Below are positions 21,652 through 55,250 of a DNA stretch of 64,000 nucleotides, piece after piece. The first letter of the stretch is position 1, and every line of letters starts with the position of its first letter. Both the position numbers and the translations under genes were made by a program. Under the pieces are notes generated by a model. The model did not search any database and was not told the DNA's origin. It saw nothing but the letters and a program-made list of their open reading frames with translations. Where the stretch lies: IMG/VR virus record IMGVR_UViG_3300037502_003770, positions 124,001-188,000 of that record; one strand, given 5' to 3'.

Positions 21652-21702
21652 AAAGGATATTCCACTACCAAAATATATTCTTCTCTTAAAATAACCATTT
21701 TT

Positions 21703-22345: not shown

Positions 22346-22595
22346 AATAACCTTTATTAAAAATACTCTTATTAAAGATATAAATAATTATAAAAATAAA
22401 TCACTTTCTCTTAATATAGAAAATTGTACATTTAAAATAAATAATACCTTATATAAATTAGAATTTTTTCAATATGGTGAAATATGTTATAGTACAAATG
22501 GTTGCTATACTTTCTTAAAAGATGATATTTTTTTATCTAAAATATCTTTACTCGACTTGCAATATATCCTTTTAAAAATGAAATCTTCTTTATGA
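22338..22595 (+). CDS. LLDLQ-family paralogue
   Basis: IKNTLIKDIN ... ISLLDLQYIL. Confidence 0.8.
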   Translation: MNKITFIKNTLIKDINNYKNKSLSLNIENCTFKINNTLYKLEFFQYGEICYSTNGCYTFLKDDIFLSKISLLDLQYILLKMKSSL

Positions 22596-22825
22596 AAGAA
22601 AAACTTGCCCTAAATATCCTACATACTATAAATCATTATAACCTTTTAAATAAAAAAATCCTTTATAATAATTTAATTTATGATTTTAAATCTTTTTATA
22701 CCATACTAGATTTTCAAGACCTACCCTTACTTGAACTACAATATTTGAAAATATTCCTTAAAACGATTGCAACCTATGGAAAAAATTACTCTTATTGGAA
22801 AAATTCTATCCCTTCTGAAAAATAA
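22592..22825 (+). CDS. LLDLQ-family paralogue (short insert)
   Basis: MKEKLALNIL ... LPLLELQYLK. Confidence 0.75.
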   Translation: MKEKLALNILHTINHYNLLNKKILYNNLIYDFKSFYTILDFQDLPLLELQYLKIFLKTIATYGKNYSYWKNSIPSEK

Positions 22826-23078
22826 AAACTTCTCACTAATAAAAAATAATAACCTAAAATTTATTTTAACTAATCAATATAATGGCTCATTATATTTCAT
22901 CTCTTATAATAATGTAAACAGTTATTATTATATACATTATTTTTACAATAATGACACCCATTTAACTACTGACTCTATTACAGAAAAAGAACTTTATTCA
23001 TACCTACTCTCTATGAATCTACTTGATATTCTCTTTATAAAATCTTATCTTATTAAAAATTCTATATATTACAGTTAG
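22767..23078 (+). CDS. LLDLQ-family paralogue (ATG at 22776 likely)
   Basis: EKITLIGKIL ... MNLLDILFIK. Confidence 0.75.
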   Translation: MQPMEKITLIGKILSLLKNKNFSLIKNNNLKFILTNQYNGSLYFISYNNVNSYYYIHYFYNNDTHLTTDSITEKELYSYLLSMNLLDILFIKSYLIKNSIYYS

Positions 23079-32836: not shown

Positions 32837-34345
32837 ATGAGAGATATTAAGAACATTGATAAGCTGAGTGATAATAATCATAAGATAGATATTTTATCTT
32901 TAAATAAATTTTTAATTGAGAGGGGAGATAATTTTTTAGAAACTATTATTACAAACAATTATACCTTTATTAAGAGGGAAGATATTACAAAAGAATTTTT
33001 TCAATTAAATTATAAAAAGATTTTTCATGGTGAAAGTATTGATGATTTGGATTTTCTTGGTAAAGATTTTCCTATTGAGTGGTATAATGTGGATATTTTT
33101 AAATATATTCTTGATACATATTTTATTTTATTTCCAGCTTTTAAAACAATAAAATTATTTCCAAAGGAGATATTCTATATTTATAATTATTGCGAATTAT
33201 TTATTAAATATAATACAGTATTTTTAGAATATATACCAAAAGATATTGAGAATTATTATGAACTTGTTAAACAAGCTTTTATCAAATATGATGAGATAAT
33301 ATGGAAAAATTGGTTTCCAAAGGAATATATTCCTCAATTAAGAAAAGACTTTCCTGATAATTTAACTGTTAAAGCTTATATTCAATTAAAAAATTTATCA
33401 GAAAATAAAAATTCTTTATTAAGGGAAGATTATCGTTATGTATTAACTAATAGTGATGTATATCTTACTAAGAAGATAGAAGCTGTAAGTGATAAAAATA
33501 AGTTTGATGCTATTGCTTTTGATAAGTATTTACTTTCTTTTGGAAATAATGATTTACACAAGATATTATTTAATAAAAGGTATATTATTCCTAGTAAGGA
33601 GAGATTTCAAAAAAATTACATGAATATTTTAAGAAAGAATAATACTGTTAAAAATATTCATGGTTATGATGATGAGAAATATGGTTATTTAAGTTCTTTA
33701 ATACCTAAAGAGTATTATACTAAAGAAATGGTAGATAAGATAGTTGAACATTTTGGTTTATTTACTGTGGTAAAAAAGAGTCTAATAAATCAAAATGTTG
33801 ATGGGTTTGCTAATTTGGTTAAGGAGTATATTACGAATAGGGCTGTTTATTCAATACTTGCCAACATTAATCCTTATATTGAGGGTTATTATGATTTATT
33901 TAAATATGCAATTGAGAAAAATCCTTTTTCGATTAAATATTTAAATACTGAATTTGATAGGTATGAAGAGCTTGCTTTATTTGCTGTTTCTATTAGTGCT
34001 GGTGTCTTATTTTATATACCAGAATATAAAAGAAGTTATTATGTTTGTTTAAAAGCTGTTTCTGAAAATGGTTTTTTAATAAAAAGAGTACCAGAAGATG
34101 TTGAAAACTATTATTCTTTAGTAAAAGTTGCTTATTTACAGAATAAAGATAGTATTAATGAAATTAATTTAAATCCTTATTATATTGATATGTTAAAAAA
34201 GGATTTTCCTGAAGACGAGGAGCTTCAAAAAAAGAAAGGTTTTGATGATGTATTTGATGACCCTTATAATTTTCTTAAAGAACATATTTCAAAACAGGTA
34301 AGAAAGTTATTAAAAGAAGCTATTTATAAGAAAGGAAATTTTTAA
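32837..34345 (+). CDS. two-module DUF4116-like repeat protein with L-x-E linker and C-terminal tag; putative internal head protein
   Basis: KIDILSLNKFLIERGD start, (I/V)PxD(I/V)ENYY repeats, linker LSENKNSLLRE, tail LKEHISKQVRKLLKE. Confidence 0.7.
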   Translation: MRDIKNIDKLSDNNHKIDILSLNKFLIERGDNFLETIITNNYTFIKREDITKEFFQLNYKKIFHGESIDDLDFLGKDFPIEWYNVDIFKYILDTYFILFPAFKTIKLFPKEIFYIYNYCELFIKYNTVFLEYIPKDIENYYELVKQAFIKYDEIIWKNWFPKEYIPQLRKDFPDNLTVKAYIQLKNLSENKNSLLREDYRYVLTNSDVYLTKKIEAVSDKNKFDAIAFDKYLLSFGNNDLHKILFNKRYIIPSKERFQKNYMNILRKNNTVKNIHGYDDEKYGYLSSLIPKEYYTKEMVDKIVEHFGLFTVVKKSLINQNVDGFANLVKEYITNRAVYSILANINPYIEGYYDLFKYAIEKNPFSIKYLNTEFDRYEELALFAVSISAGVLFYIPEYKRSYYVCLKAVSENGFLIKRVPEDVENYYSLVKVAYLQNKDSINEINLNPYYIDMLKKDFPEDEELQKKKGFDDVFDDPYNFLKEHISKQVRKLLKEAIYKKGNF

Positions 34346-34944
34346 TGAAGAATTTTAATAAATTAAATGATACTAAACATGAGATAGATTTAATTTCTTT
34401 AAGTGATTTTTTACTTGAGAAGGATGATGATTATTTAGATAAGTTTATAAAAAAAGAATTTAAAAAACCTGAAGATATAACAGAGACATATCTTAAATTA
34501 TGGTATAAGTATATATTTAATATAGATAGTTATTTTGGTGTATCATACACTGAGTTTGATTTTACTGGTGATGATTTTCCTATTGAGTGGTATATGGATG
34601 CAAAATTTTTAGATACTTTATTTGAAGAATCTGGTATTAAGTTTTTAATGTGTGTACCAAAAGTATTAAGATATGATTATGAAGTTTGTGAACGTTCTAT
34701 TAATAAAAACCCTATTTCTTTAAAGTATGTCCCAAAAGATATTGAGAATTATTATGGTTTAGTAAAGCTTGCTTTTAAGAAAAAACAAAATTTAATTGGA
34801 CAAAAATGGTTTCCAAAGGAATATATTCCTCAATTAAAGAATGATTTGGATGATGAATTATCTCAACATTATTTAAATCTTCAGGAGCATATTTCAAAAG
34901 AAGTGAGGAAACTTTTAAAAGAATACTATTTAAAGAAAATATAG
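34345..34944 (+). CDS. DUF4116-like repeat protein with C-terminal tag
   Basis: EIDLISLSDFLLEKDD ... LQEHISKEVRKLLKE. Confidence 0.7.
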   Translation: MKNFNKLNDTKHEIDLISLSDFLLEKDDDYLDKFIKKEFKKPEDITETYLKLWYKYIFNIDSYFGVSYTEFDFTGDDFPIEWYMDAKFLDTLFEESGIKFLMCVPKVLRYDYEVCERSINKNPISLKYVPKDIENYYGLVKLAFKKKQNLIGQKWFPKEYIPQLKNDLDDELSQHYLNLQEHISKEVRKLLKEYYLKKI

Positions 34945-34948
34945 TTAG

Positions 34949-36511
34949 ATGGGATTAGTGTATAATAATAAGAGGATTAAAAAAGATATAAGTGATATTC
35001 ACAATATTGATATTATTTCTTTAAATAAATTTCTTCTTGATAAGGGTGATAAATTTTTTGGAAAGTTATTATATTACAATTGGTGTTTACTTCCTGATAA
35101 GGAGACTTTTCAAAAGAATTGGATGTATTATATTGAAAAGTACGATAAATACAATGAAGATGGTTTTGGTAAAAAATCAAATTTAATACCAAAAGAATAT
35201 TATACAAAAGAGATAATTAATTCTATATTAAAAACTGATTTTGATAGTAATCATAGTTTTACTTTAATTAATCAATATGCTGATGGTTTTGCTGAAAGTG
35301 TTAAGGGTTATTTATTAGATAGAGTTATGTATACAAATTTGTTATATTTTATTAAATCTGATATACCTGGTTATTTTGAGTTATGTAAATCTTTAATAAA
35401 AAAGAACCCATCATATATTGACTATGTACCTAAGACTTATGATAATCAAAAATTAGTTGAGCTTTGTGCGTTAGCTGTTTCTATTGATGGTATGATTTTA
35501 AGATATGTTAGAGATAAAATTGATTTATTTTCAAATCCAAATGTTATATATACGGCAATTAAAAATAATACAATAGCTTTAAGATTTGTACCTACTAGTA
35601 TAGAAAATTATTATTCTTTTCTTAAAACAGCTTATACATTAAATAAAAGAATAATTTCAATAGATAGTGCAAAAGAATATCTTGATGATTTAAAAAGAGA
35701 TTTTCCTGAAGATATAGATTTTATTGAGAAGCGAATTAATCTTCAAGAAAATAAATCTTTATTAAAGGAAGAGAATTTTAATGAGGAGTCTTTTGTTTTT
35801 ACTTCAGATAGACATAAGATAGATATTAAATCTTTAAGCAATTTCTTAATTGAGAAGGGTGACAGGGTTTTAGATACATTATTATATGCTCGTGGTTATA
35901 AGGAAATAGATTATTATTCAGATTTTTTTAGGGAAGAGATTATAAAATATGTTAATTCTGATATTATTAAAAAGATTCCAAAAGAATTGTGGGATGATTA
36001 TTCTTTTTGTTTAACAGTTTCTTCAAGAAATGGTTATTATGCAATTGATTTTATTAATGAAGATTTTTTAAATGATTATAATATTGTAAAAAATCTTTTA
36101 ACTCAACAAGGTGAATTAATAAATAAAGTTAATCCTGATATTTTGGATGAGAAATTAATTAGATTAGCGAATAAAACAAATACTAGTGGAAAAGATTTAA
36201 CTGATACTTGTTATTTTTGGGAACATTATGATGGGAGGTATGAATTATTAAAGAAAATTATTTCTGTATACCCTGATAAAATAAGGTTTATTAGACCTAG
36301 TGATAGTAGATTTGCTGTTGATAAAAAATATTATGAATTATTAAAAATAGCTTACTTAAAGAATAAGAATATTTTAAGATATAAAGATATTAAATACAAG
36401 TATACACCTTATTATGAAAAATTAAAAAATGAGTTTGGTATTAAATTTTATTTAAAAGAGTATATTTCAAAACAGGTAAGAAAGTTATTAAAAGAAAAAA
36501 TCTCCTTATAA
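34949..36511 (+). CDS. two-module DUF4116-like repeat protein
   Basis: Two ID.xSL..FL..KGD starts, linker LQENKSLLKEE, tail LKEYISKQVRKLLKE. Confidence 0.7.
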   Translation: MGLVYNNKRIKKDISDIHNIDIISLNKFLLDKGDKFFGKLLYYNWCLLPDKETFQKNWMYYIEKYDKYNEDGFGKKSNLIPKEYYTKEIINSILKTDFDSNHSFTLINQYADGFAESVKGYLLDRVMYTNLLYFIKSDIPGYFELCKSLIKKNPSYIDYVPKTYDNQKLVELCALAVSIDGMILRYVRDKIDLFSNPNVIYTAIKNNTIALRFVPTSIENYYSFLKTAYTLNKRIISIDSAKEYLDDLKRDFPEDIDFIEKRINLQENKSLLKEENFNEESFVFTSDRHKIDIKSLSNFLIEKGDRVLDTLLYARGYKEIDYYSDFFREEIIKYVNSDIIKKIPKELWDDYSFCLTVSSRNGYYAIDFINEDFLNDYNIVKNLLTQQGELINKVNPDILDEKLIRLANKTNTSGKDLTDTCYFWEHYDGRYELLKKIISVYPDKIRFIRPSDSRFAVDKKYYELLKIAYLKNKNILRYKDIKYKYTPYYEKLKNEFGIKFYLKEYISKQVRKLLKEKISL

Positions 36512-37165
36512 AAGGAGATTAATTTTTATTTGTTTAATTTCTTCTTTAAGAATTTTCTTTACTTGTTTTTGTATATATTCTTCAAGATAATTTCTATCGA
36601 TTTTATTTGGATTAACAATATTTAGTTTAATATTTCTTTGATTACAAAGGTTTTGTAGTTCATCTATAATTTCTTGAGGGTCACGATAATCCACATCCTC
36701 ATAATAATTATCTACTTTTTTTATATCTATTTGAATAATGTATTTTGAAAAATTTTCAATTCTATCTTTATTTGATAAAATCCTATCTTCATACTCAAAA
36801 TTCCTATCATCTTTATTAGCAAATTTAAAATGGTTAAATGGTTGACCTTTATAAGTTTGTGAAAGTTTTCTACCATCTAATTTTAATCTAACAATAAAAT
36901 CTAAATCATATAATTCTTTTTCATTCCAATCATTATTTAATTTATAAAAACCAGTTTTTGATGATTTAGTTCTACTTAGTGATAAATAATTATATCCATT
37001 TATATAATCATCATCTTCACCATATTTTAAATAAAAAATATCATCTTTTAAAATACTTATAATACTACTTAACGTTGTAAAATGATATACTTCATCAGTT
37101 ACAGATTCTTTTAATAAACTCTTTACTTGTTTTTGTATATATTCTTTTAATAATTGATTTTCCAT
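36506..37165 (-). CDS. ADP-ribosyltransferase-like domain flanked by two tags
   Basis: VYHFT...LSLSR...LDGRKL...FEYEDRILS; LKEYIQKQVKSLLKE at the N-end and LEEYIQKQVKKILKE at the C-end. Confidence 0.6.
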   Translation of the reverse strand: MENQLLKEYIQKQVKSLLKESVTDEVYHFTTLSSIISILKDDIFYLKYGEDDDYINGYNYLSLSRTKSSKTGFYKLNNDWNEKELYDLDFIVRLKLDGRKLSQTYKGQPFNHFKFANKDDRNFEYEDRILSNKDRIENFSKYIIQIDIKKVDNYYEDVDYRDPQEIIDELQNLCNQRNIKLNIVNPNKIDRNYLEEYIQKQVKKILKEEIKQIKINLLL

Positions 37166-37236
37166 TAAAAATAACTCTTTTATATAAATAGGTTTTATTT
37201 TAAAATTACTATTTAAGAAAAAGATGATTATTTTTA

Positions 37237-40200
37237 ATGAAAGATATTAATGTAATAAATGATAATAATAAGATAGATTTAAGTTCTTTGAATAAATTTC
37301 TTATTAGTAAAGGTGATGAGTATTTAGAATATTTATTAATTAGTAATGTTTATAATAAAAATATTACAGAAGACAAAATTAGAGAATATGTTTTAAAAGG
37401 TTATAATATTAAAGAAGAATTATTAAAGTTTGTTACAAAAGATAAAGAATTATATTCATATATTAGTTTAATGAATAAAGTACTTGAAGAAATATATAAA
37501 GAAAATTCAAGCGAAGAAGATACTGAGTTTTATATATTACCTTTAGATTTTATTAAAAGTAATAAATATTTTTCAATAGATAAATTTTTTAGTGTATATG
37601 GTGGGTATGCTATTAGATTTATACCATATGAATTACAAACAAAAGAATTATGGGAATTTTCAGCTTTAAAATCACCTTATTTTATAAGTGATGATAGTTT
37701 TCCTCAAGAGTATAAAAGTTATAATTTATTTTTAAAATTAATTGAGATTGAATCATCTCTTATTTATGATGCAGCTGATAGTAATATTTTTAATAAAGAT
37801 GAGATTTATAATTTATTCGAGTTTACATACAAAAAATATATTAAAGAAAATAATGTATCTGAATTTTGGAAAACACATAGATATAACCCATTAGATTTTA
37901 AAGATATATATCTTAAATTAGCAAGTAATTTTAAACATGAATCATATTTAAAAAAATATGGGATTCCTGATATTCATGATGTACCTAGATTTGCATTTAA
38001 TGAAAGTAAGTCTTTATTAAAAGAAGAAACTTTATTGGATAAATTTAAATTAATGGATGAAAATAAGATTGATTTATTTTCTTTAAATAAATTTCTTCTT
38101 TCAAAAGAAGATAATTTATTAGAATATTTATTATTAGAGAATAATTTAATTTTTGGTTTAGATGAAAATAAAATTAGAAACTTTATATTAAAAGGTTATA
38201 AACCGTTAGAAACATTTCCTAATAATATAAAAATTGATATGGATTTAAAGGAGTATGTTAATGTATTATTAACTTTTGAATCTATTAAATATATTCCTAA
38301 TGAGAAATATACTGTTTCGTATGCTAAATTAAAAGATAATAAATATATTTCAATAGAAGGTCTTTTAAAATATAATTCTTTATTTATTAGGTATATCCCT
38401 GAAAATTTATTAACACAAGAAATATGTAATAATGTATATAATAAAAATTACAGAATTTTTAGAGAAATTCCAAATAGGTTTAAAACATATGAAATGTGTG
38501 AAAATGTTATAGGTAAAAACGCATATTTTTTTGTTTATTTACCTGACCCTTTGGATAATGGTACTTTAATTACGGTTCAGGAATGTTATAAATTATTAAA
38601 ACTTGCTCATACTTATTATATTGATAAAGATAAATTTTCAAATGGTGTTGAACAATTTTGGAGTGATGCTATTGTTTCAAAATTAGATAGAGATTATTTT
38701 GTTAGATTAATGTATGAAGTAAATGCACAAGAATATGTAGGAAAATACGGTCAGGGTGGTATTAAGAAAAATAATAATCTTCAAGAAAGTAACTCTTTAT
38801 TAAAGGAAGAAGAATTCTTTAATGTAGAACAACTAGAATATGATTCAGATAAAAATAAAATAGATTTACAAGAATTAAGTGAATTTTTATATAATAACGG
38901 AGATGATTATTTAGAATATTTATTAGCCAATAAAGAATATATTAAAGTTGATAGTAAAAATGTTTTTAGATTATATAAAAATAAAAATTTTAAAGATGTA
39001 ACTGAATTTTTAAATATTGGTTATGATTTTTTAAATGTAATATTAACTGACCCTATTGAAAAAAACAAAATAGAACAATTTTATTTAAAAAACCGATACC
39101 CTCATGATTATCCAGATATTTTATGGGAAAGTCGTGCATTTTGTGAGGCTGCTTTAATTAAACAAAAGAGTTGTTTATATAAAGTACCACTTAAATTTAG
39201 AGATTATAAAATGTGTAAGCTTGCTGTTAGTTTTGATGGTGATAATATAAAAAGTGTACCTGAAAATATTGAGAATTATTATTCTCTTTGTGAAATGGCT
39301 GTTTCTCAAAGGGCTTGGTCTTTGATGTTAATTGATAAGAATAAATGGGATTATAATTTATATGAAAAAGCTGTTTCTCAGAATGGTGGTGTTTTATTTT
39401 ATATACCTGAAAAATATAGAGACTATAATTTATGTGAAAAAGCTGTATCTAGTGAACCTAGTTCAATATATGATGTACCTAAAAATATTGAGAATTACTA
39501 TTCTTTAATAAAACTTGCTTACTCAAAGGATAAAACAGTTATATTAGATATGAATTTACCAAAAGAGTATTTTGATAAATTAAAAAATGATTTTCCTAAA
39601 GACTTTAATCTTCAAGAAAGTAAGTCTTTGTTAAAGGAAGGAATTACTGATGAGGTATATCATTTTACAACATATCAATCAGCTGCTGAAATATTACAAT
39701 ATAATAGATTTAAATTTTCTATTGAGACTGAAGGTGATTCTTTATCAAGGATGAATAATTACAAAAATTATATGTCTGTAAGTAGGACTAAGTCTTTAAA
39801 TAAAGGTTTTTTTAATACAATAAAGAATGGTGTTAATTTAGTTATTAGATTTAAACTTGATGGTAGAAAATTAGCTCAAAAATATAAAGGTATTCCATTT
39901 AATTATTTCCCTGCTTGGGGTAAAGAAAATTATGCTTTTGAATATGAGGATAGATTGCTTTCAAATGATGAATATATTGAAAATTTTTCAAAATATCTTT
40001 TATCTGTAGATATTATTGATTTAACTATTGGAAATAATATAAATAAAACAAAAATCCATACAATAAAAGAATTATCTCAAAAATTAAATCTTGTTTGCAA
40101 TGTTTATAAACATGATGATAATAATATTGTAAGAAAACAATTTCAATCCGACCCGATTAATTTTATTAAAAATAAAGGAACTTTTGTTTTAAATGATTCT

Positions 40201-42216
40201 TTTTTTACAAAAGAAATTGTTGATGAAATATATAATCATTTTAAAGAAAATATTTATACATATATTCGTTTATCTCAAATACCAGCTGAATTTAGAAATT
40301 ATGAGCTTTGTGAATTATATATAAAAAAGAACCCTATTAATATTATAGGAGTACCTTCACCAAATAATACTTTAATAAAAAACAATTTAATATCAAGAGA
40401 AGAATATATGTCTTTGGTAAGGATAGCTTTTTCTTTAGATAAAAATATAATAGATTATATCCCAGATGAATTTGAGAAAATATTAAGAGATGAAATTAAT
40501 AAAGCAAGTAATAATAATCTTCAAGAAAGTAAATCTTTATTAAAGGAAGGTATTACTGATGAGGTGTATCATTTTACAAGTTTAGAAAATTTTATTAAAA
40601 TAATGAATACAAATACATTTAGATTTTCAGATTTATTATATGATTTAAGTGATGTTATTCATAATACACCTTTAAAAAAATATAAATATTATATGTCTTT
40701 AAGTAGGACTGGTTCAATAAAAACAGGTTATGGTAACTATCAAAGTGATAATAGTAATTTTATTGTTAGATTAAAAATAGATGGTAGAAAACTTTCGCAA
40801 AGTTATAAAGGTCAACCAATAAATTATCATAATTATGGTAGAAAACAAAAATCTAGTAAAAAAACTAGTTTTAGATTTGAATATGAGGATAGAATATTAT
40901 CCAATAAACCAACTATTGAGAATTTTTCAAATTATGTTTTAAGTGTTGATATTATTAAAATTACTAATTCATCTAATAATTTTTTATTAGATGATGATAT
41001 GAAATCATTAGAATATATATTAAAAAATAAAGAAAATTATAACGCACCAATAAATTTCACAAATGAAAAAAATTCACCTCTTAATGAAAATAAATCTTTA
41101 TTAAAGGAAGGTATTACTGATGAGGTGTATCATTTTACAAGTTTAGAGAATTTAATTAGAATATTAAAAAGTAATTCTTTAAATTTAAGTTTTATGGATA
41201 ATGATATTAATCAGACTTGGAATAGGAAAGATAGCAATATACATAAAACTTTAAATAAATATATGTATTTTTTATCATTAAGTAGAACAAAGAGTATTGA
41301 TAAAGGTTATGCTCAAGTATTAAAATCACAAAATATACCTGTCATTACCAGAATTAAACTTGATGGTAGAAAACTTTCTTTTAATAATAAAATTATACCT
41401 TTTGATTATAATCAAACTATTAGCCGAAATGTTAATAAAAATGATAAATATTTTGAATACGAAGATAGATTAGTTAGTGATAAATCTTCAATTAAAAATA
41501 TAAATAATTATATTTTAGAGATTGATATTTTTATGTATTATAATTATGATTTTCAAAAAGATAGTTTTTTATTCTTAAAAGAATATCAAAATACCACAAA
41601 TATACCGATAAAAGTTTTTAATAAAGTAAAAAATAATTCTTTAAATGAAAGTAAATTATTATTAAAGGAAGATTATACAGAGGAAGAAGTTTTAGAAGAA
41701 ATAAGTGATAAAAATAAAATAGATTTAATTTCTTTAAATAAATTTCTAAAAGAAAATAATGATGATTATTTAGAATATTTATTATTTTATAATGATTTTT
41801 TAAATATAGAAAGAAATATTATAAAAATAGTAAAAAATAAATACATTACAGGTTTTGGTAGTTTCCCAATAAAATATTTATATCAACCAAAAGTAATAAG
41901 AGAAATAGTATTAAGAAATCCTGAATTATTAGAAAGATTGAATTTATATTACTTAGAAAGAATGGAAGATAGTAAACAGGAAATGAAAGATATTTACAAA
42001 TACGCTGTAATAAATAAACCAAATATGTTATCACGTATACCAACTAATCTACCTTATTATGATGAACTGCTTGAGGTGATGTTTCAAAAAGATAGAGGTA
42101 ACTTATTTGATTTATTAATTATTCAACCAAAATCTATTCAACAAAGTAATATGTTAAATAAAGTAATATCTTTTTTACAAAATAAAGGTTATACTTTAGG
42201 AAAAAATCCTTCTTAA
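37237..42216 (+). CDS. 1659 aa seven-module polyprotein (4 DUF4116-family-type modules and 3 ART-like modules)
   Basis: Six (L/F)(Q/N)E(S/N)(K/N)(S/L)LLKE linkers at 37996, 38779, 39610, 40519, 41080, 41641. Confidence 0.75.
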   Translation: MKDINVINDNNKIDLSSLNKFLISKGDEYLEYLLISNVYNKNITEDKIREYVLKGYNIKEELLKFVTKDKELYSYISLMNKVLEEIYKENSSEEDTEFYILPLDFIKSNKYFSIDKFFSVYGGYAIRFIPYELQTKELWEFSALKSPYFISDDSFPQEYKSYNLFLKLIEIESSLIYDAADSNIFNKDEIYNLFEFTYKKYIKENNVSEFWKTHRYNPLDFKDIYLKLASNFKHESYLKKYGIPDIHDVPRFAFNESKSLLKEETLLDKFKLMDENKIDLFSLNKFLLSKEDNLLEYLLLENNLIFGLDENKIRNFILKGYKPLETFPNNIKIDMDLKEYVNVLLTFESIKYIPNEKYTVSYAKLKDNKYISIEGLLKYNSLFIRYIPENLLTQEICNNVYNKNYRIFREIPNRFKTYEMCENVIGKNAYFFVYLPDPLDNGTLITVQECYKLLKLAHTYYIDKDKFSNGVEQFWSDAIVSKLDRDYFVRLMYEVNAQEYVGKYGQGGIKKNNNLQESNSLLKEEEFFNVEQLEYDSDKNKIDLQELSEFLYNNGDDYLEYLLANKEYIKVDSKNVFRLYKNKNFKDVTEFLNIGYDFLNVILTDPIEKNKIEQFYLKNRYPHDYPDILWESRAFCEAALIKQKSCLYKVPLKFRDYKMCKLAVSFDGDNIKSVPENIENYYSLCEMAVSQRAWSLMLIDKNKWDYNLYEKAVSQNGGVLFYIPEKYRDYNLCEKAVSSEPSSIYDVPKNIENYYSLIKLAYSKDKTVILDMNLPKEYFDKLKNDFPKDFNLQESKSLLKEGITDEVYHFTTYQSAAEILQYNRFKFSIETEGDSLSRMNNYKNYMSVSRTKSLNKGFFNTIKNGVNLVIRFKLDGRKLAQKYKGIPFNYFPAWGKENYAFEYEDRLLSNDEYIENFSKYLLSVDIIDLTIGNNINKTKIHTIKELSQKLNLVCNVYKHDDNNIVRKQFQSDPINFIKNKGTFVLNDSFFTKEIVDEIYNHFKENIYTYIRLSQIPAEFRNYELCELYIKKNPINIIGVPSPNNTLIKNNLISREEYMSLVRIAFSLDKNIIDYIPDEFEKILRDEINKASNNNLQESKSLLKEGITDEVYHFTSLENFIKIMNTNTFRFSDLLYDLSDVIHNTPLKKYKYYMSLSRTGSIKTGYGNYQSDNSNFIVRLKIDGRKLSQSYKGQPINYHNYGRKQKSSKKTSFRFEYEDRILSNKPTIENFSNYVLSVDIIKITNSSNNFLLDDDMKSLEYILKNKENYNAPINFTNEKNSPLNENKSLLKEGITDEVYHFTSLENLIRILKSNSLNLSFMDNDINQTWNRKDSNIHKTLNKYMYFLSLSRTKSIDKGYAQVLKSQNIPVITRIKLDGRKLSFNNKIIPFDYNQTISRNVNKNDKYFEYEDRLVSDKSSIKNINNYILEIDIFMYYNYDFQKDSFLFLKEYQNTTNIPIKVFNKVKNNSLNESKLLLKEDYTEEEVLEEISDKNKIDLISLNKFLKENNDDYLEYLLFYNDFLNIERNIIKIVKNKYITGFGSFPIKYLYQPKVIREIVLRNPELLERLNLYYLERMEDSKQEMKDIYKYAVINKPNMLSRIPTNLPYYDELLEVMFQKDRGNLFDLLIIQPKSIQQSNMLNKVISFLQNKGYTLGKNPS

Positions 42217-42258: not shown

Positions 42259-43221
42259 TTATTTAAATTTTTCATTTTTTATACCCATTTTATAATATTT
42301 TTCAAAAGTAAATTTTGCTTTAGTTAGTTGTATTTTTAAAAATTCCCAATACTTTTTAAAAATCTTTTTTAATATAAAAGAAATTCTTTTATAATGTTTT
42401 AATTCCACATAAGAATATAGTTTATTAAAATCATTAGTTATTTGATTATCTTTAATATTATTAAATATTGGTTTTAAACTATCCAATAGATATCTTGTAA
42501 TACCATCATCATATACAACATCATCAATATTTTTATATAATTCATATTCATTATTTGTTAAAATATTTTCAATATCTTGATAATATATTTTATATATCTT
42601 TGTTTTAGTTTTATCAGCTTTACATCTACCAAATACATAAAAATTAATAGTATTTGCTCTAATTTCTTGGTCGGACAAATAATAAATCATCCTTTTATCT
42701 ATTACAAGTGTTAATTCTTGAATAATTTCTTTTTCATTATTATAAGATTTGTATAAGTTATTTAAATATTTATTAGATGTATTATTAATGTTTTCGATTT
42801 CATCAAAATAATGTCTTAATTCATGAAAAACTGTTCTATATAATCTTTTTAGATAAGCGTGTTTATAATTTATCTTATCATCAATATCTAAATCTATCGC
42901 ATCATTAATATAATAATTATTAATTATAATTTCATGTATCCTAGAGTTTTTAAAATAATTACCTAATAACTCTTCTTTTTTATCAGATATTACATTTATT
43001 CGTAAATCTTTTTCTTTATTAAATTTTATATTAAAAAAATCAGAGTTAAAATCATATATATTATTATTATCAAAATTATAATATAACGACAACCGTTTAT
43101 TTAATTCAAAAGTTTTTAAATTAATAACAGAAAATATTTTTTTTGTTATATTAAAAGCAAGTTCTTTAATTCTTTTATTTATAATATTTTCTGATACTTT
43201 ATATTCGTTTAATTTTTTCAT
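42259..43221 (-). CDS. HExxH zincin-like protein
   Basis: TVFHELRHYFD...QEIRAN; N-terminal MKKLNE. Confidence 0.55.
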   Translation of the reverse strand: MKKLNEYKVSENIINKRIKELAFNITKKIFSVINLKTFELNKRLSLYYNFDNNNIYDFNSDFFNIKFNKEKDLRINVISDKKEELLGNYFKNSRIHEIIINNYYINDAIDLDIDDKINYKHAYLKRLYRTVFHELRHYFDEIENINNTSNKYLNNLYKSYNNEKEIIQELTLVIDKRMIYYLSDQEIRANTINFYVFGRCKADKTKTKIYKIYYQDIENILTNNEYELYKNIDDVVYDDGITRYLLDSLKPIFNNIKDNQITNDFNKLYSYVELKHYKRISFILKKIFKKYWEFLKIQLTKAKFTFEKYYKMGIKNEKFK

Positions 43222-43224
43222 GTT

Positions 43225-45411
43225 TTATCTACGTTTAACTACATAATAAGTATTATTTTCAAATTCAAAATCACCTAAAATAGTTTCATAAGCTAATATA
43301 TCATGTGCGCTGTATTCATATATAGTATTACTTACTAATTCTGTAATATAATCACTATACTTAGAACTATTACCAGTAAAATCAATATATTGTATTAGAT
43401 TTGAATAGCCATATAATTCAGTTACATAATCATTTATTATATTAATCATTTTTCCTTGTAATACTTTTTCTTTTACTTTTTCTTTTAACAAATTTATATA
43501 GTCTTCATCTAATATATCAGAATTATTATTGTTATATGATAAATAAAAAGCAATAGGATATTTATATTTTTTTCTTTTACTATAAAGATAAAGGTTTAAT
43601 CGATAAATATAATTTGATAGATTATTACCTTTTGGTACAACAAGAATATTAGCTTTTTCAAAATAAAATGTACTCTTATATAATTTTTTTATTTTATCAC
43701 ATAATTCAATTATCTCAGAATTATTTTCTTTTTTAGCTATTGCTTTTACTGTATATAATAAATTTTTTATGAAAAAATCATTATTAGGTCCAGGTAGTCT
43801 TATTTCATAAAACATGTTTTCTTTTTGATTTAAATAAAATTCATTTTCTTTTTCATTATTATTTGAATAATTTAAATAATGTCTATTTAAAAGTTCGTAT
43901 AATTTATATGGTTTACTTTGATAATAATTTAAATATTCAAACGGAAAAATATTTCTATCTAATTCAAGAAATTCTGTATATTTTTTTAAATCATTAATAA
44001 AATTTTGTCTATTACCGTTATATAAATTTTTTATTATACCATTTATATTAAATATTTTTTCATTATAGAATATATCAGTAAATAAATTTAAATCATTAAA
44101 ACTATATTCTAAATTATCAATAATATACTGACGAATTTCATCTGAGTCAAAATTATCATTTATATTATCCTCATTCCATTCTAATTTATCTAAAAATTGG
44201 TTAATATATTTTTTATTTTCAGCAAAGTCATCATAATAAGAACCAAAATTATCACGATAGAAAGAATCATATAAACTATCATGTTCATATACTTCATATT
44301 TATCACCGTCATTATCTATATAAACATTAGGTTCTGGTTCATCTACGATTTTAACTCCTAGGAAATCAGCTAAAGCTTCTTCAAAAGTTTCACTTTCTAC
44401 TTCTAACCCATCTGGTGTTAAAAACTTAGCTTTTAAACCATTATCAAGATATGGTAAAGATAACCCTTTAACGGCTGTACCATGATATGTTTCAGTAGTA
44501 TTTGTTGTTACTTTAAAACCTAGATTATTATTAATATAATTTTTTATTAAGTCACTATCTAAAACACCGTAAGTTCTATCTAAATAAAATTCACCTTTTT
44601 CTTTATAAAGAGTTTCTATATAACGAATAATATTTCTACTTAAAGGTGTATAATTAACTTTATTACCAGCTTGGTCAATAAAAGGTTCATCATATATCAT
44701 ATAACAGACTTTCATATTTTTATCAAAAACATTATTAAGAAGTTTTTGATTATGTGAACCATTATATAAATTTTGACAACTATTAAAAAAACAACTTACT
44801 GACATATTTAATACGTCAATAGGTTTATCACTTATATAAATATAAGCTTTCTTTAATTTATTATTATTTACAATTAAAGTTAAATTTGTTATACCATTAA
44901 TAATACCGTTAATTGTTTTTTCTTCAGATTTTAAATCTTGTGAAGTATATGATAAATTAAAATTATTTTTTTCACAATGGGTTAAAAAATTATAAAGAGA
45001 TGTTTTATTATTAGATATCTCTAATGTTTGAAAATTCTTTATTAAATAATATTCTTTACTTAGTATTTTTCTAATTTCATCTACCATTAAATAATCATCT
45101 TCATCACTAACATTATGATTAATATTTTTTAAAACATTAATTTTTGTTAGATAATCAACCAATTCAGATTTAGCAAATTTAGTTTTACGCAATTGTTTAA
45201 TTATATTTTTACTATTCTGTTTAATAATCTGTTCTTTAATAACTGATAATAATTTTTGGTCAGTTATTTCTTTTTTAATATTAGGTATTATAGGATTTTT
45301 TTCAGGAACTTCTAAATCAAGAGCTTTATCACCATGTTTTACAGCTTTTTGCATGTATTGAGGTACTACATCTCTAAACTTTGCTTCATCTATATATTTT
45401 CTTTTCATCAT
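43225..45411 (-). CDS. large hypothetical protein
   Basis: 728 aa; DVLNMS..FFNSCQ..LDRTYG; no confident family. Confidence 0.75.
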   Translation of the reverse strand: MMKRKYIDEAKFRDVVPQYMQKAVKHGDKALDLEVPEKNPIIPNIKKEITDQKLLSVIKEQIIKQNSKNIIKQLRKTKFAKSELVDYLTKINVLKNINHNVSDEDDYLMVDEIRKILSKEYYLIKNFQTLEISNNKTSLYNFLTHCEKNNFNLSYTSQDLKSEEKTINGIINGITNLTLIVNNNKLKKAYIYISDKPIDVLNMSVSCFFNSCQNLYNGSHNQKLLNNVFDKNMKVCYMIYDEPFIDQAGNKVNYTPLSRNIIRYIETLYKEKGEFYLDRTYGVLDSDLIKNYINNNLGFKVTTNTTETYHGTAVKGLSLPYLDNGLKAKFLTPDGLEVESETFEEALADFLGVKIVDEPEPNVYIDNDGDKYEVYEHDSLYDSFYRDNFGSYYDDFAENKKYINQFLDKLEWNEDNINDNFDSDEIRQYIIDNLEYSFNDLNLFTDIFYNEKIFNINGIIKNLYNGNRQNFINDLKKYTEFLELDRNIFPFEYLNYYQSKPYKLYELLNRHYLNYSNNNEKENEFYLNQKENMFYEIRLPGPNNDFFIKNLLYTVKAIAKKENNSEIIELCDKIKKLYKSTFYFEKANILVVPKGNNLSNYIYRLNLYLYSKRKKYKYPIAFYLSYNNNNSDILDEDYINLLKEKVKEKVLQGKMINIINDYVTELYGYSNLIQYIDFTGNSSKYSDYITELVSNTIYEYSAHDILAYETILGDFEFENNTYYVVKRR

Positions 45412-46211
45412 TATTCAGGTTTATTAATATTATTTTTGATACTAAATAATTCTTGGTTATTAACACTATATTTATTAATAATTGAAGTTGGTGCTTTCAC
45501 TATTTGGAAATCTGATTTCTTAATAAGATAACCTCTTAAAACAACTTTAAATACTTTTACATAATATCTTTTTCCTTCAAGGTCATTTAATGTTCCATCG
45601 GAACTAACATCTTCAAGATTTAAAGGCATGTAATGACCGTTTACATTAATATATAATTGTCTTTCATTAAACTTATTTAAATAAAGTTCAACCATTTCAT
45701 TTACATCGGTTATAAAAGCTGATATTAATCTTATTTCATATTCAATATCTATTGGAGTTGGTTGAGTTATTTTATAATGAATATATGTTAACATATCATT
45801 TTCAATAACAGGCATTTTATAATAACTAAAAGCTTTTTTATTAGGAATATTAAATTTCTCTCCGTAGATAGTTCCTTTAAGAATATTGGTTCTTTCCATT
45901 GTTATAAATGGAGGAACAAGGTTTTTATTATCATCTTGCAAGTGCCAAGTTTTTTGAAATTCACCCCATCTTTCATTATTCATAAAAATTGTATCAACTT
46001 TAACTCTTTCATCATTTTCACTAAGAATTGATAATGATAAATCACCTTCATTTGTACAATTAAATACAGCAATATCCAAATCGGCAATATCAATACTTTG
46101 AGGTAAAAAAGTAGAGTTTTCATCTGTTTGATTTAACAGTTCTTCAACACGAACAATTCCAACATTTGTAGGGTATGTATTTCTTAAAGAAGTTTTTTTA
46201 GGTAGAGCCAT
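45411..46211 (-). CDS. tail completion / sheath terminator (T4 gp15-like)
   Basis: VPPFITMER and QPTPIDIEYEIRLISAFITDVNEMVE resemble gp15-family motifs; structural gene context. Confidence 0.55.
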   Translation of the reverse strand: MALPKKTSLRNTYPTNVGIVRVEELLNQTDENSTFLPQSIDIADLDIAVFNCTNEGDLSLSILSENDERVKVDTIFMNNERWGEFQKTWHLQDDNKNLVPPFITMERTNILKGTIYGEKFNIPNKKAFSYYKMPVIENDMLTYIHYKITQPTPIDIEYEIRLISAFITDVNEMVELYLNKFNERQLYINVNGHYMPLNLEDVSSDGTLNDLEGKRYYVKVFKVVLRGYLIKKSDFQIVKAPTSIINKYSVNNQELFSIKNNINKPE

Positions 46212-46965
46212 TTACTTTTCTTTTAAATAGTAATTCTTTTAAAAGTTTTTTTACCTCTCTTGAAATATATTCTCTTAAATTAAACTTCTCTTTTATTTGT
46301 TTTAATATCAAAGGGTCTTCTATATAGTAAATAAGGGTTTTATCATTAGAAACAACTATTTCCCAAAGGTGAAAATCTTGTAAATGTTTAGGTACATGAA
46401 ATATTGAATCAGAAAAACTTAAAACAGCTTTTTCACAAAGAGAGTAATCTATAATTTTTTTAGATACATATGGTAAACAACCATATTGAGACGTAACAGC
46501 TTTTTCACAAAGAGAGTAATAATTTTCAATATTATCAGGTACAAATTGTAAAGCTGTGCCATCTTGAGAAATAGCTTTCTCGCAAAGAGAATAATCTCTT
46601 AATTCTTCTGGCACAAATTCTAAAGCTGTTCCATTTGTAAAAACAGCTTTCTCACAAATAGAATAATCTCTTAAATGTTTAGATACAAATTCTAAAATCC
46701 AACCATTTTTAGAAACAGCTTTTTCACGAAAAGAATATATATTCCATAATTCTTTTGGTATACGTTTAATATCATCTTCTTCATTGCTGTATATTATACT
46801 TATATAATAATTTAGTAATCTTTTATTAGAAAGGTTTTTTTCTTTAAAACCATTTACTTGCAATAATATATCTATTAAATCATCTCCTTTCTCAAGTAAA
46901 AAATTATTTAAAGAAAGTAAATCTATTTTATGTTTATCACTTATATTTTCTAACTTATTATTCAT
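46198..46965 (-). CDS. DUF4116-like repeat protein with C-terminal tag
   Basis: 25 aa repeats VPEELRDYSLCEKAxxxGxALxF; tail LREYISREVKKLLKE. Confidence 0.8.
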   Translation of the reverse strand: MNNKLENISDKHKIDLLSLNNFLLEKGDDLIDILLQVNGFKEKNLSNKRLLNYYISIIYSNEEDDIKRIPKELWNIYSFREKAVSKNGWILEFVSKHLRDYSICEKAVFTNGTALEFVPEELRDYSLCEKAISQDGTALQFVPDNIENYYSLCEKAVTSQYGCLPYVSKKIIDYSLCEKAVLSFSDSIFHVPKHLQDFHLWEIVVSNDKTLIYYIEDPLILKQIKEKFNLREYISREVKKLLKELLFKRKVNGST

Positions 46966-51488: not shown

Positions 51489-52418
51489 ATGGATTTATTT
51501 TTTGATAAACAAACATTATTGGATAGAGAAACTAGTAATCCTACTAGTTCAAACCCTACTGGTCTTAGAAGTACTAAGACTATACATAAGGGTATTGTTG
51601 TTAGTGTAGATGATAGTGAGAATGGTAAAAGAATTAAAGTTCGTTTAACTGGTTTTGATGATGGCGTTACTGATGAAAATTTACCTTATTGTTATCCTTT
51701 ACTTCCTTTTAATATTACAATTACACCAACAGAAAAGAGTATTGTAAGAGTAATTATTTCTGATATTTCAGCTCCTTATCAAGATAGATTATATATTTCA
51801 GAAGTTATTTCACAATTTCAAAATTTAAATGGTCAACCGTTTTTTATTGATACTAAAAATAAATATAGTGAAGAAGCTTTATTTAATCAAAATAAAAATC
51901 AACCAATAAAAAATATACCAACAGTAGGTGATTTATACCCTAAAAATAAAAAAGAATTATTAGATACAATTTCATTTAATAGTAAAAACGGTAAAACCGA
52001 TTTATTATTAAATGAAAACTATTATTCTTTAAGGACAAATAAATTTAAAGTAAGTAATACTGAAAAGAATTTAACTAACCCTTGTTATATAAACGGTTTT
52101 TTAGAACCAAAGAAAAATGTTAACTATAATATAATTAATTCTGATAAGATATTTTTACTTTCAAATAAAACCAATCTTAATTATAATAAGAATTTAATAG
52201 AAAGTAAAGACTCTCAAGAAATAGATAATTTATTAAAACAAGTTCATAATGTTGGTTATGGTGATACCATTGCAGAGTTTTTAGATTTATTTAGAAAGGC
52301 TTTTACAAACCACGTTCATTCTTATGATGGTAAAGAACCAATTAATAGTGATTTTATTAAAAAATTAAATGAATTTGATTTATCAAGAATATTCTCAAAA
52401 GATATACATATTAATTAA
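51489..52418 (+). CDS. baseplate central spike (gp5/gpV/VgrG-type OB-fold)
   Basis: GIVVSVDD..GKRIKVR...LPYCYPLLP...RLYI; C-terminal NHVH metal-binding motif. Confidence 0.7.
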   Translation: MDLFFDKQTLLDRETSNPTSSNPTGLRSTKTIHKGIVVSVDDSENGKRIKVRLTGFDDGVTDENLPYCYPLLPFNITITPTEKSIVRVIISDISAPYQDRLYISEVISQFQNLNGQPFFIDTKNKYSEEALFNQNKNQPIKNIPTVGDLYPKNKKELLDTISFNSKNGKTDLLLNENYYSLRTNKFKVSNTEKNLTNPCYINGFLEPKKNVNYNIINSDKIFLLSNKTNLNYNKNLIESKDSQEIDNLLKQVHNVGYGDTIAEFLDLFRKAFTNHVHSYDGKEPINSDFIKKLNEFDLSRIFSKDIHIN

Positions 52419-52455: not shown

Positions 52456-53211
52456 ATGATTAATTTAGGTATTATAAAAACAAATCTGAGTAGAGTTGTA
52501 GCTGAGAATCTATTATCTGAAAATAAAGATATTAATAAAGTTGATTTATATAAAAATTTTTTAAATATTCTTAAAACATCAGATATTCTTATGTTGGAAT
52601 ATAATATATTTAAAAATTTTGAACAAAAGAATCATTCTATTGAATCAGCTTATAATTTAATATCTGAAAATTTAAGACCGATAAAGTCTTTTACAAAGAA
52701 AGAAATTATTAATGAGAATAAAAAAATAAAAGATTTTAATTTAAAAAATAATCTTTCTCAAAAAGAAAACACTTTTTATAATGCTATTCATAATTTAATT
52801 ATGGAATCAACAGCTAAATATCCTGATATTAATCTTTTACATGAATCACATGAAATTATATTAAATTCTTTACTTGAAAAAAAATCTCTTATTAAAGAAG
52901 AAAGACAAATTAATAAAGTAAATAATGCTGTTATAAATTTGGCTACTAAAAAAATTAATGAAGAGATAGGTAAATTCTCTTCTAAAGAAAAAGATATATT
53001 GCAAACTTTATCTAAAGGAACTTTTAATGATAAAGTAATGTTGCTTGAAAATATTAAAGGTGAGTGTAAGATATTAATAGAAGATTCTAAATCTTTAATA
53101 GAAGATTATGTTTATGAAAATACTATTAATAAAATAAATAATATTGATGCAACGCCTGAAACTATAAATGAATCAATACTTGATTTATATTCTTTGTTAA
53201 GTGATGAATAA
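52456..53211 (+). CDS. hypothetical late protein
   Basis: 251 aa with many L/I-x-E sites; CTATTTA at 52428. Confidence 0.75.
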   Translation: MINLGIIKTNLSRVVAENLLSENKDINKVDLYKNFLNILKTSDILMLEYNIFKNFEQKNHSIESAYNLISENLRPIKSFTKKEIINENKKIKDFNLKNNLSQKENTFYNAIHNLIMESTAKYPDINLLHESHEIILNSLLEKKSLIKEERQINKVNNAVINLATKKINEEIGKFSSKEKDILQTLSKGTFNDKVMLLENIKGECKILIEDSKSLIEDYVYENTINKINNIDATPETINESILDLYSLLSDE

Positions 53212-54007
53212 ATTAAAAGTAATTAATGATAATAATCAAATAGATTTACTTTCTTTAAGTAATTTTTTATTAAGAAAAAAAGATGATTATCTTGAAGCTT
53301 TATTAAAAATAAATGGTTATAAAAAATTAATTATTGATTATAATAGTGATTTCTTTTTTGATAGAATTTTACCATACGGAGAATCAAAATATTTTAATGT
53401 AAATATAATACCAGACCAATATTGGTATAATTATGATTTTTGTATGAGAGCCATTTCGTCTAATGGCTGTGGTTATTTATTATCTTATGTACCGAAAGAA
53501 TTAAGAGATTATAAACTTTGTAAGAAAGCTGTATCTGATAAAAATAGTGCTGGTATTATTTTAGGTTTTGTTCCAAAAAAATTAAGAGATTATTCTCTTT
53601 GTGAAATAGCTGTTTATAGTGATTGGATGAATTTAGAATATGTACCAGAAAATTTAATAGATTCTTCTTTATGTGAAATAGCTATCACTCAAAATGGTTA
53701 TTCTTTAAAATTTGTACCGAAAGAATTAAGAGATTATTCTCTTTGTGAGAAAGCTGTTAATAATAATGCTTTCGCTTTACAGTTTGTTCCTAAAAATATT
53801 GAAAATTATTATTCTTTACTAAAAATAGGTTTTAAACAATACGATTCAGCTTTAGTTAGTAATGAATGGTTTCCAATAAACTATATTCCTCAATTAATCA
53901 AAGATTTTCCACAATATAAAGAATCACTTGAATCGTATCTTCTTCAAGAATATATTAAAAAAGAAGTAAAGAAATTATTAAGGGAGTACTATTTAAAAGA
54001 AAAATAG
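53201..54007 (+). CDS. DUF4116-like repeat protein with C-terminal tag
   Basis: VPKELRDYSLCEKAV repeats; LQEYIKKEVKKLLRE. Confidence 0.8.
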   Translation: MMNKLKVINDNNQIDLLSLSNFLLRKKDDYLEALLKINGYKKLIIDYNSDFFFDRILPYGESKYFNVNIIPDQYWYNYDFCMRAISSNGCGYLLSYVPKELRDYKLCKKAVSDKNSAGIILGFVPKKLRDYSLCEIAVYSDWMNLEYVPENLIDSSLCEIAITQNGYSLKFVPKELRDYSLCEKAVNNNAFALQFVPKNIENYYSLLKIGFKQYDSALVSNEWFPINYIPQLIKDFPQYKESLESYLLQEYIKKEVKKLLREYYLKEK

Positions 54008-54008
54008 T

Positions 54009-55250
54009 ATGTCGTTTTTCAATTGTAACCTTGATGAAATCAATAAATATAAGATAGTAGATATTGATATATCAGATAATAAATCATGGAATTTAAATAC
54101 TGGTTTAACTATTAATTCATTAAAAAAATATAATGATGCAATAACATCTACTTTTGAATTACCTACTTATGGATTAACAGCGTTTGATTATGGTTTAGTT
54201 AATTCATTAACAGCAACAACTACCATCAATTATACAGATAATAAATTAAAATTACAAAGAGTAGGAGAAAATGATTTTACTGGTAATACAAGTTATACTG
54301 GGTATAGTATTACACCTGTAACAACAGCTACTACTGTAGGGAATTATTTTCTTTTAGAAGGAGGATATTTTACAGGGTTTTATAAACTTCATGATTATGA
54401 ATATGAAATATTACCTTATAGATATAACGAAGGTTTAACTATTTCAACATGGATTAATGTACAATCAGGTATTACTTTTGAAAATATTTTATCTGAAAAA
54501 GATGGTTTCTTTTTTTATATGGGTGCTTTAGCTGAGAATAAATATTCATTAGCTTATTCAGGTGATACAATATATTCTTCTTTTACTGGAACAAATATCA
54601 CAAAAAATGTAGATTTATCAGGAAATACAACAGGTTTAACAAATATTTTTTTAAATGACCATACTGATTTAGAATCAGGTATTACTAAAAATATAATAGC
54701 TTTTAGAATAAATCAAAATAAACAGATAGGTTATAGATTTTTAGATTATACTGGAAATACAATAGAAAATTATTCTGATAAAGAAATTTCTTATGGATGG
54801 AATAATATTACAATAACATTTAAACCAAAAGAATTAATTAAAGATAAAGATTTATTAAATTGTTATAAAGATAGGGATATGGTATTGACAATTTATTTAA
54901 ATGGGATTATTATTTATGAAGAAATAGATTTTAAAGAAATATGGTTTAAAGAAATGTTTACTGAAAGAGAAAAACAATTACATATACCATATGTTATTAA
55001 TTGGGGTGGAGGTAGTTTTGGTTTAAAACATTCTTGGCATTTCAATAATTCATTAAATGAGTTTATTCAAGATGAAAGAAAAAAAGATTTATTAATTGAG
55101 AAAAATTTTGATGGTTCTTTTTATGGTGGTATTCAAAAATTGGAATTATATAATAAAGCGTTAAATTTTATTGAGGTAAGAAAAATTATTGAATATTATT
55201 CAAAATATAATATAAATAATTTTAAAGGCGGAAGATTGATTAATATATAA
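54009..55250 (+). CDS. LamG/concanavalin-A-like virion protein
   Basis: LTISTWIN, GWNNITITF, TIYLNG, FYGGIQKLELYNKALNFIEV. Confidence 0.65.
   Translation: MSFFNCNLDEINKYKIVDIDISDNKSWNLNTGLTINSLKKYNDAITSTFELPTYGLTAFDYGLVNSLTATTTINYTDNKLKLQRVGENDFTGNTSYTGYSITPVTTATTVGNYFLLEGGYFTGFYKLHDYEYEILPYRYNEGLTISTWINVQSGITFENILSEKDGFFFYMGALAENKYSLAYSGDTIYSSFTGTNITKNVDLSGNTTGLTNIFLNDHTDLESGITKNIIAFRINQNKQIGYRFLDYTGNTIENYSDKEISYGWNNITITFKPKELIKDKDLLNCYKDRDMVLTIYLNGIIIYEEIDFKEIWFKEMFTEREKQLHIPYVINWGGGSFGLKHSWHFNNSLNEFIQDERKKDLLIEKNFDGSFYGGIQKLELYNKALNFIEVRKIIEYYSKYNINNFKGGRLINI

Follow-up and report, generated by a model that had tools for sequence, protein, structure and literature searches.

Four paralogous modules of predicted ADP-ribosyltransferase fold in a subsurface phage genome, members of a large phage family that may be delivered as head cargo

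The phage record IMGVR_UViG_3300037502_003770, a genome of 312,694 bp from a subsurface metagenome (22% G+C; CheckV completeness 96%), carries two neighbouring open reading frames (ORFs) that together encode four copies of a domain resembling the ADP-ribosyltransferases (ARTs), enzymes that use nicotinamide adenine dinucleotide (NAD+). Both ORFs lie in the window analysed here, a stretch of 64,000 nucleotides comprising bases 124001-188000 of that record, and coordinates below refer to this window unless the genome or another phage is named. The small ORF (36506-37165, minus strand) encodes 219 residues, arranged as a 20-residue leader with two L-K-E sites, a single module of predicted ART fold and a C-terminal tail in which the motif EYIQKQVKKILKE is repeated. 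Its module, here termed D (36716-37114, minus strand; residues 18-150), contains the candidate active-site residues H28, S62, R65, E124 and E126. The large ORF (37237-42216, plus strand) encodes a polyprotein-like product of 1659 residues built from seven modules, three of predicted ART fold and four of other kinds, the latter carrying either a KIDLxSLNKFL motif or DUF4116 repeats. The three ART-fold modules, all on the plus strand, are A (39631-40029; residues 799-931; H809, E902 and E904), which continues into a DUF4116-like extension up to residue 1093, B (40540-40986; residues 1102-1250; H1112, E1215 and E1217) and C (41101-41568; residues 1289-1444; H1299, E1407 and E1409).

All modules of the large ORF are separated by an 11-residue linker of the form L(Q/N)E(S/N)(K/N)(S/L)LLKE, present in six plus-strand copies that end at residues 263, 524, 801, 1104, 1291 and 1478 and whose terminal L-K-E is a candidate prohead-protease site. 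The first copy (37993-38025) is of the NESKSLLKE type and the second (38776-38808) reads LQESNSLLKE; LQESKSLLKE then stands directly before module A (39607-39639) and again before module B (40516-40548), LNENKSLLKE directly before module C (41077-41109) and LNESKLLLKE after module C (41638-41670). An L-x-E site lies ahead of every ART module, that of the small ORF included, and related metagenomic phages that differ in their number of modules (P0012, P0013) retain the linkers. About ten further ORFs of the genome terminate in a longer form, xYISK(Q/E)V(R/K)KLLKE, which also flanks the small ART ORF on both sides.

A sequence-only reading of the window had placed four paralogous ART-like domains at this locus, and alignment of the modules agrees with it in detail. 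The shared start GITDEVYHFT falls exactly at 39640, 40549 and 41110, its counterpart SVTDEVYHFT begins at residue 21 of the small ORF, and a profile search of the whole genome recovered these four copies and no others. The modules are about 140 residues in size, are 44-51% identical in pairwise comparisons over approximately 145 residues, and share the blocks VYHFT, SxSRT, DGRKL and FEYEDR without exception. Because this identity together with the invariant blocks far exceeds what chance would produce, we regard the modules as real paralogues and reject an origin as chance repeats. The same reading had held that the loops between the motifs differ, which proved correct: identity among the four modules is 58-61% in the core segments vs 8-17% in the three intervening loops, of which loops 1 and 2 vary in length as well.

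These modules most likely belong to a large, phage-restricted family without a name, lying within the ART superfamily. A search with a 13-sequence profile against 1.84 billion cluster representatives (50%-identity clusters from metagenomes) gathered at least 3,371 proteins at E <= 0.001, of which 1,935 reach E <= 1e-10. The typical member is a protein of about 300 residues with the domain at its N terminus; among 155 family proteins examined, taken mainly from the top of that search, 24 contain two to eight copies of the domain, and some relatives fuse it with NUDIX, ART-PolyVal, GNAT or nucleotidyltransferase domains in architectures of the polyvalent-protein kind. Members are also encoded by cultured phages of Alishewanella, Dickeya, Vibrio, Pseudomonas, Rhizobium, Salmonella, Salicola and Microcystis hosts, where all are labelled hypothetical. 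No relative was detected when 185,579 species genomes of prokaryotes were scanned by pattern, and at that sensitivity the family seems absent from cellular genomes. Scans of the Pfam and PHROG libraries found no model that covers either the modules or the wider family, and blastn of the locus against phage records returned no match. The designation as unnamed is judged by these two libraries, and the 16 ART families of a survey of viral NAD+ systems may include it. One metagenomic relative of the small ORF (P0025) has the same leader and ART-fold module and adds an extension of roughly 260 residues; a weak L544-like nucleotidyltransferase match (E 6e-5) covers the junction of module and extension, at residues ~150-234.

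Conservation across the family was assessed in an alignment of 148 diverse domains with a mean column identity of 26%, numbered on window positions 36671-37114 (minus strand). Only two columns, E107 and E109, are invariant (148/148); S45, R48, G81 and R111 are each kept in 147 of the 148 domains, and D110 is Asp in 144 and Glu in the remaining four. Position 11 is His in 136 domains (92%), Arg in 11 (7%) and Phe in one, an alternation of His and Arg like that between the H-Y-E and R-S-E clades of ARTs and a typical feature of the superfamily. The strand-2 motif of the family can be written [YF]-x-S-[TL]-x-R-[ST], with the Arg nearly invariant, and in its [YF]-x-S-T-x-R form resembles the Y-V-S-T-S found on strand 2 of R-S-E toxins. 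The catalytic signature read earlier from the four modules comprised a strand-1 His, an S-x-S and an E-x-E; the His and the E-x-E stand, and the S-x-S of the four modules is narrowed in the wider family to its first Ser.

Structure prediction gave a model with a predicted local distance difference test score (pLDDT) of 74 from 13 sequences, and with a pLDDT of 84.4 and a predicted template modelling score (pTM) of 0.78 from 148 sequences. The modelled order is a strand at residues 8-14 carrying H11, a helix at 15-24, a short strand, a strand at 42-47 carrying S45, a strand, a helix, a strand, the strand 109-114 and two further strands, which as modelled constitutes the split beta-sheet of the ART fold. 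H11, a putative NAD+ contact, would precede the first helix as the strand-1 His or Arg of ARTs does, and the E-x-E would sit at the junction of the loop with strand 5, with E109, the predicted catalytic Glu, as the first residue of that strand. The S45 motif maps to strand 42-47, which is equated with ART strand 2 by position and motif.

The fold had been set in advance as a check on the ART reading, and the model came out as ART: the best 50 matches in a search of 48,161 PDB representatives, carried out independently of Foldseek, are ART-superfamily structures without exception (50/50). They include KptA, Tpt1, DarT, CC0527, TreX, HopF/AvrPphF, pertussis toxin, Scabin, PltA, LT, Tne2, CARDS toxin, PARPs, diphtheria toxin, RES toxins, SPN, MTX, SopF and Tse2, among which DarT gives the longest structural alignments (120-126 residues). 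Foldseek itself ranked Tpt1/KptA, CC0527, DarT, cholera toxin and pierisin at the top of its PDB matches with weak E-values, and its candidates, when re-examined, likewise proved to have ART-superfamily folds. AFDB clusters and ESM Atlas models contributed HYD1, DUF4433/DarT, DUF952, DUF2971 and Tpt1, the first three of which are named by AFDB clusters, and the nearest neighbours by protein language model were a viral DarT/PARP cluster, ranked first, and Arr, HYD1 and OspC clusters. Searching the PDB by sequence, with profiles of 4 and of 148 sequences, yielded nothing above noise level (DHFR, ferredoxin reductase and a designed helix bundle, each at E > 0.05), and these results were set aside. 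As far as a predicted structure can carry the point, the proposal that the four modules are diverged paralogues of the ART superfamily is supported.

Comparison with named ART families places the modules apart from each of them. Tox-ART-HYD1 (PF15633), which also appeared among the AFDB and language-model neighbours, is the commonest weak Pfam match (10 of the 148 members), followed by DarT (3 of 148; best E 0.0073), and one relative (P0014) matches Tpt1 at 22.5 bits. Multi-copy relatives exceed the HYD1 cut-off of 25 bits by summing partial matches (P0022, 39.9 bits; P0019, 31.6 bits); the window's ORF stays below this gathering threshold at 11.4 bits. The HYD1 matches reach only the first 20-40 positions of the profile, and the HYD1 signature is H-Y-D vs H/R-S-E in the family. 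ART-PolyVal (PF18760) is a different family, whose model matches separate regions of two relatives (P0015 and P0117).

The closest comparisons are those with DarT (DUF4433, PF14487) and Tpt1/KptA (PF01885). DarT combines a His with R51, which follows strand 2 in the motif F-Y-F-x-P-R-S, and with a Q-x-E at residues 158-160 (PMC11281641). The S-T-x-R-S and E-x-E of the family resemble this R51 motif and Q-x-E, an equivalence drawn by motif only, and the almost invariant family Arg lies, like R51, three residues past the strand-2 Ser. The H-S-E combination once described as mixing two ART classes thus holds as a conservation pattern and is less of a hybrid than was supposed, since DarT already pairs a His with Q-x-E (PMC11281641). 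However, DarT is the ADP-ribosyltransferase of DarTG toxin-antitoxin systems, acting on bases of single-stranded DNA as a host defence toxin, whereas the family is encoded by phages; the long ARTT insertion of DarT is absent from the modules, which fall under the DarT threshold in Pfam, and likeness past strand 1 is not significant. No Macro domain, as would mark a DarG partner, occurs in the 312,694-bp genome, which places the modules outside DarTG; the genome has three NUDIX genes. Tpt1/KptA provides the top structural matches (Z 8.0-8.8, root-mean-square deviation 2.4-3.3) and a common Y-H-x-T on strand 1, but only its C-terminal NAD+-binding lobe matches (Tpt1 residues 86-186). The modules, which begin at strand 1, do not have the two-lobed organization of Tpt1/KptA, and Tpt1, of the H-H-h clade, has no catalytic Glu, whereas the E-x-E of the family is invariant. 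In hhalign comparisons against DarT and Tpt1 alignments built from genome sequences, the segment from YHFT through the following helix aligned with YHIT of DarT (P 3e-4) and YHGT of Tpt1 (P 1.4e-3); global alignments were judged untrustworthy beyond strand 1 and helix 1 and were rejected.

From these likenesses arises the strongest alternative to an arsenal of protein-modifying enzymes, namely that the modules consume NAD+ without ADP-ribosylating proteins, as DarT-like ARTs of DNA bases or RNA, as Tpt1/KptA-like transferases acting on nucleic-acid phosphates, or as plain NADases. Its attractions are that Tpt1/KptA and DarT are the best structural matches, the DarT alignments being the longest, that a near-invariant Arg follows the strand-2 Ser at the spacing of DarT R51 beside a DarT-like His and acidic motif, and that the top language-model neighbour is the viral DarT/PARP cluster. 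On the other hand, Arg-specific protein ARTs characteristically have an E-x-E, sequence likeness to DarT and Tpt1 ends after strand 1 and helix 1, and the N-terminal lobe of Tpt1 is missing; in the NADase version, moreover, an injected enzyme would starve the phage itself. We accord this alternative a substantial chance, though one well short of even.

Indirect evidence that the modules may travel in the phage head comes from the genes and motifs around them. The genome encodes a gp21-type prohead protease (Peptidase_S77, PF03420, 96.8 bits, matching at genome 199979-200467 in a gene at 199874-200542) together with a gp23-type capsid protein (PF07068, 197.8 bits; genome 203284-205053). The latter has a propeptide of about 60 residues, placed by analogy to T4 gp23, with NLQE at 20 and MLNE at 60, roughly 20 residues ahead of the conserved mature core; both sites are of the L-x-E kind seen in the linkers of the polyprotein. 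In T4, gp21 cuts a 10-residue capsid-targeting sequence, MKTYQEFIAE, off internal proteins (PMC8442874) and cleaves Alt at ITE-6 and LTE-619 (PMC5694885). Comparable sites recur across the family: 127 of the 155 proteins have [LIVMF]-x-E positioned 4-7 residues before the His, with a modal leader of 9-10 residues, as in MKLTELLTE or MKYLKIFEQFLNE. To judge from sequence, these have the form of T4-type internal-protein leaders, short and ending in (L/I)-x-E before the putative mature protein.

Gene arrays in other phages point in the same direction. In Alishewanella phage Slickus01, whose genome includes an S77 protease, nine adjacent genes at 5857-12459 have the common leader MKIDxLYESLLEE, five of them encoding members of this family and four unrelated proteins, and neighbouring proteins on a marine contig display the same common-leader pattern. 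Such arrays with a shared leader of about 10 residues ending in L-x-E are like the T4 internal proteins with their capsid-targeting sequence (PMC8442874). By contrast, the homologues of phages JA11, Lu11 and Sen-NF, in which no Pfam S77 match was found, have no L-x-E leader and start directly at the strand-1 motif, from which it follows that the leader is separable from the ART fold. One of the non-family genes of Slickus01 (6862-7374) has a WYHGS motif directly after the leader and may encode a different ART.

T4 Alt, which had been put forward as a precedent for a packaged and protease-processed ART, is an apt one. In both cases the phage encodes a gp21-type protease and a gp23-type capsid protein and the enzyme is flanked by (L/I)-x-E sites, and Alt and the window's modules have in common the E-x-E and the (here predicted) ART fold. 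The packaging of Alt has been demonstrated, whereas delivery of the window's modules with the DNA is a prediction. Nor are the modules Alt/VIP2-type R-S-E enzymes, defined by an Arg, S-T-S and E-x-E: they have no detectable sequence likeness to Alt, all four have His on strand 1 where Alt has Arg (a residue found in 7% of the family), and the domain of about 140 residues, present in four copies of which three share one polyprotein, contrasts with the ~680 residues of Alt. Phages and conjugative elements offer a second precedent in their polyvalent proteins, which likewise combine several effector domains in one phage polypeptide and have been proposed to be delivered alongside the DNA (PMC5512222, PMC9503650). 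Those proteins differ from the large ORF, where a regular 11-residue linker is repeated between every module, a regularity that suggests systematic cleavage into single domains. By analogy with Alt, these features lend indirect support to the idea that the family is injected head cargo.

On balance, the explanation that we consider best, and narrowly probable, is that the modules are ART-superfamily effectors that are packaged, processed by the gp21-type protease and injected. Several points weigh against it. On the enzymatic side, no curated model reaches threshold on the window's own modules, the best Pfam trace being that of the YHFT region against Tox-ART-HYD1 (E 0.53); the profile-profile likeness to DarT and Tpt1 is confined to strand 1 and helix 1; and residue equivalence with known ARTs is assigned by secondary-structure position and motif, not by superposition. 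With regard to cargo, the co-occurrence of leader and S77 protease was compared in five genomes only, and [LI]-x-E is common in this AT-rich proteome, with 40 instances in the large ORF vs about 25 expected. The L-x-E residues are modelled fairly confidently beside the domain (pLDDT 88 for residues 1-10) and might in part be a structural element, some relatives' genes sit among non-structural genes, and searches for virion proteomes of the cultured relatives came up empty.

Some of these same points speak for enzymes that stay out of the virion, being made during infection and acting in the cytoplasm like T4 ModA and ModB, with the LLKE linkers and leaders serving as helical connectors or belonging to the domain. 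In its favour, L1 and E3 of the leader are conserved and have reasonably confident model scores, the JA11, Sen-NF and Lu11 homologues do without such a leader, and one marine relative is encoded among Hsp70, DnaJ and PhoH genes, not structural genes. We nevertheless think this explanation unlikely: the linker also separates non-ART modules and in its longer form terminates many other ORFs, unrelated neighbours carry a common leader in two other phages, which is the pattern of T4 internal proteins, and the T4-type protease and capsid are present in the genome. A catalytically dead ART-fold relic, with a structural or scaffolding role in the head or a role in binding, would accord with the abundant DUF4116-repeat proteins of the structural region and with the absence from the genome of an NAD+-related partner such as a Macro domain, but is rejected as very improbable, because the invariant polar pattern (E-x-E-D-R, S..R, H/R and D-G) at canonical active-site positions, held through 148 sequences of about 26% identity, is typical of an enzyme and an alternation of His with Arg makes sense only if the residue contacts NAD+.

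For packaged and injected effectors, we infer NAD+ use, cleavage, packaging and ejection from the paralogy, fold, conservation, protease and capsid genes and leader/linker pattern described above, and propose the following course. The ART proteins would be made late, alongside the head proteins, and guided into a T4-type prohead by their leaders or linkers, which are similar to the capsid-targeting sequence of T4. The gp21-type protease would then cut after the Glu of L-x-E, releasing three ART and four non-ART modules from the 1659-residue precursor and trimming the 219-residue protein, and the modules would enter the host along with the ejected DNA. There, each may ADP-ribosylate a different host macromolecule using NAD+: H11 (or Arg) and S45 would hold the NAD+, E109 would be catalytic, E107 and R48 would act on the acceptor, and the variable loops would choose the target of each paralogue. 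As to the class of target, protein is our first choice, if by less than an even chance, given the E-x-E and the Alt precedent; nucleic acid comes close behind it, given the likeness to DarT and Tpt1 and the conserved Arg; and hydrolysis of NAD+ or some other chemistry appears rather improbable. A wider proposal, which we offer tentatively, is that the family forms a phage-specific H/R-S-ExE clade of ARTs, routinely delivered by T4-like leaders as head cargo and expanded into arrays, or into polyproteins open to cleavage, whose enzymes have different targets, some of them possibly offensive DarT-like ARTs of nucleic acids.

Other features of the genome lie around this locus or share its motifs. 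Just upstream, at 32837-36511 (plus strand), three DUF4116-repeat ORFs of 502, 199 and 520 residues each carry a terminal xYISKQVRKLLKE motif, and the third, of 520 residues, has an additional internal NLQENKSLLKE linker. They form part of an expansion that amounts to 40 Pfam repeat matches in the genome, in genes interleaved with tail and head genes; further loci lie in the window at 46198-46965 (minus strand), 53201-54007 and 55250-58236, and in the genome at 6449-7915, 10001-10522 and 188157-198659. Many of these proteins open with a KIDLxSLNxFLLEKGD motif and close with xYISKEVRKLLKE plus 5-8 residues, and with this shared motif they could represent additional proteins of the head or of ejection. 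Following the large ORF, a minus-strand block of four genes (42259-46965; 320, 728, 266 and 255 residues), the first three without a database match, is flanked by plus-strand genes, and a baseplate-hub-like gene (phrog_430, a weak match) comes after it at 51489-52418. Elsewhere in the window, seven tandem paralogous ORFs of about 100-140 residues occupy 19813-23078 (plus strand), each with a conserved terminal SLLDLQFI motif; this array lies within the sole stretch of strongly negative GC skew on the plus strand (-0.34 to -0.36). A transposase gene resides within the phage genome at 18228-19403 (phrog_506, E 1.6e-126), and a 400-residue ORF at genome 195915-197117 (minus strand), on the opposite strand inside the head-gene block, may by its look encode another mobile-element protein.

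The novelty of the finding is at the level of a family, within the already known phenomenon of phage-delivered ARTs. T4 Alt is a known packaged ART, and packaging of ARTs has also been predicted in the case of polyvalent proteins; here, a family covered by neither Pfam nor PHROGs extends through thousands of clusters from environmental phages. The repeated linkers would make the large ORF a natural protease-cleaved cargo polyprotein of a T4-type head, and the relatives in cultured phages open the question to direct experiment. If active, the modules would amount to a widely distributed set of NAD+-dependent effectors that are injected and whose target loops diversify, with a bearing on how phages take over their hosts and counter host defences.

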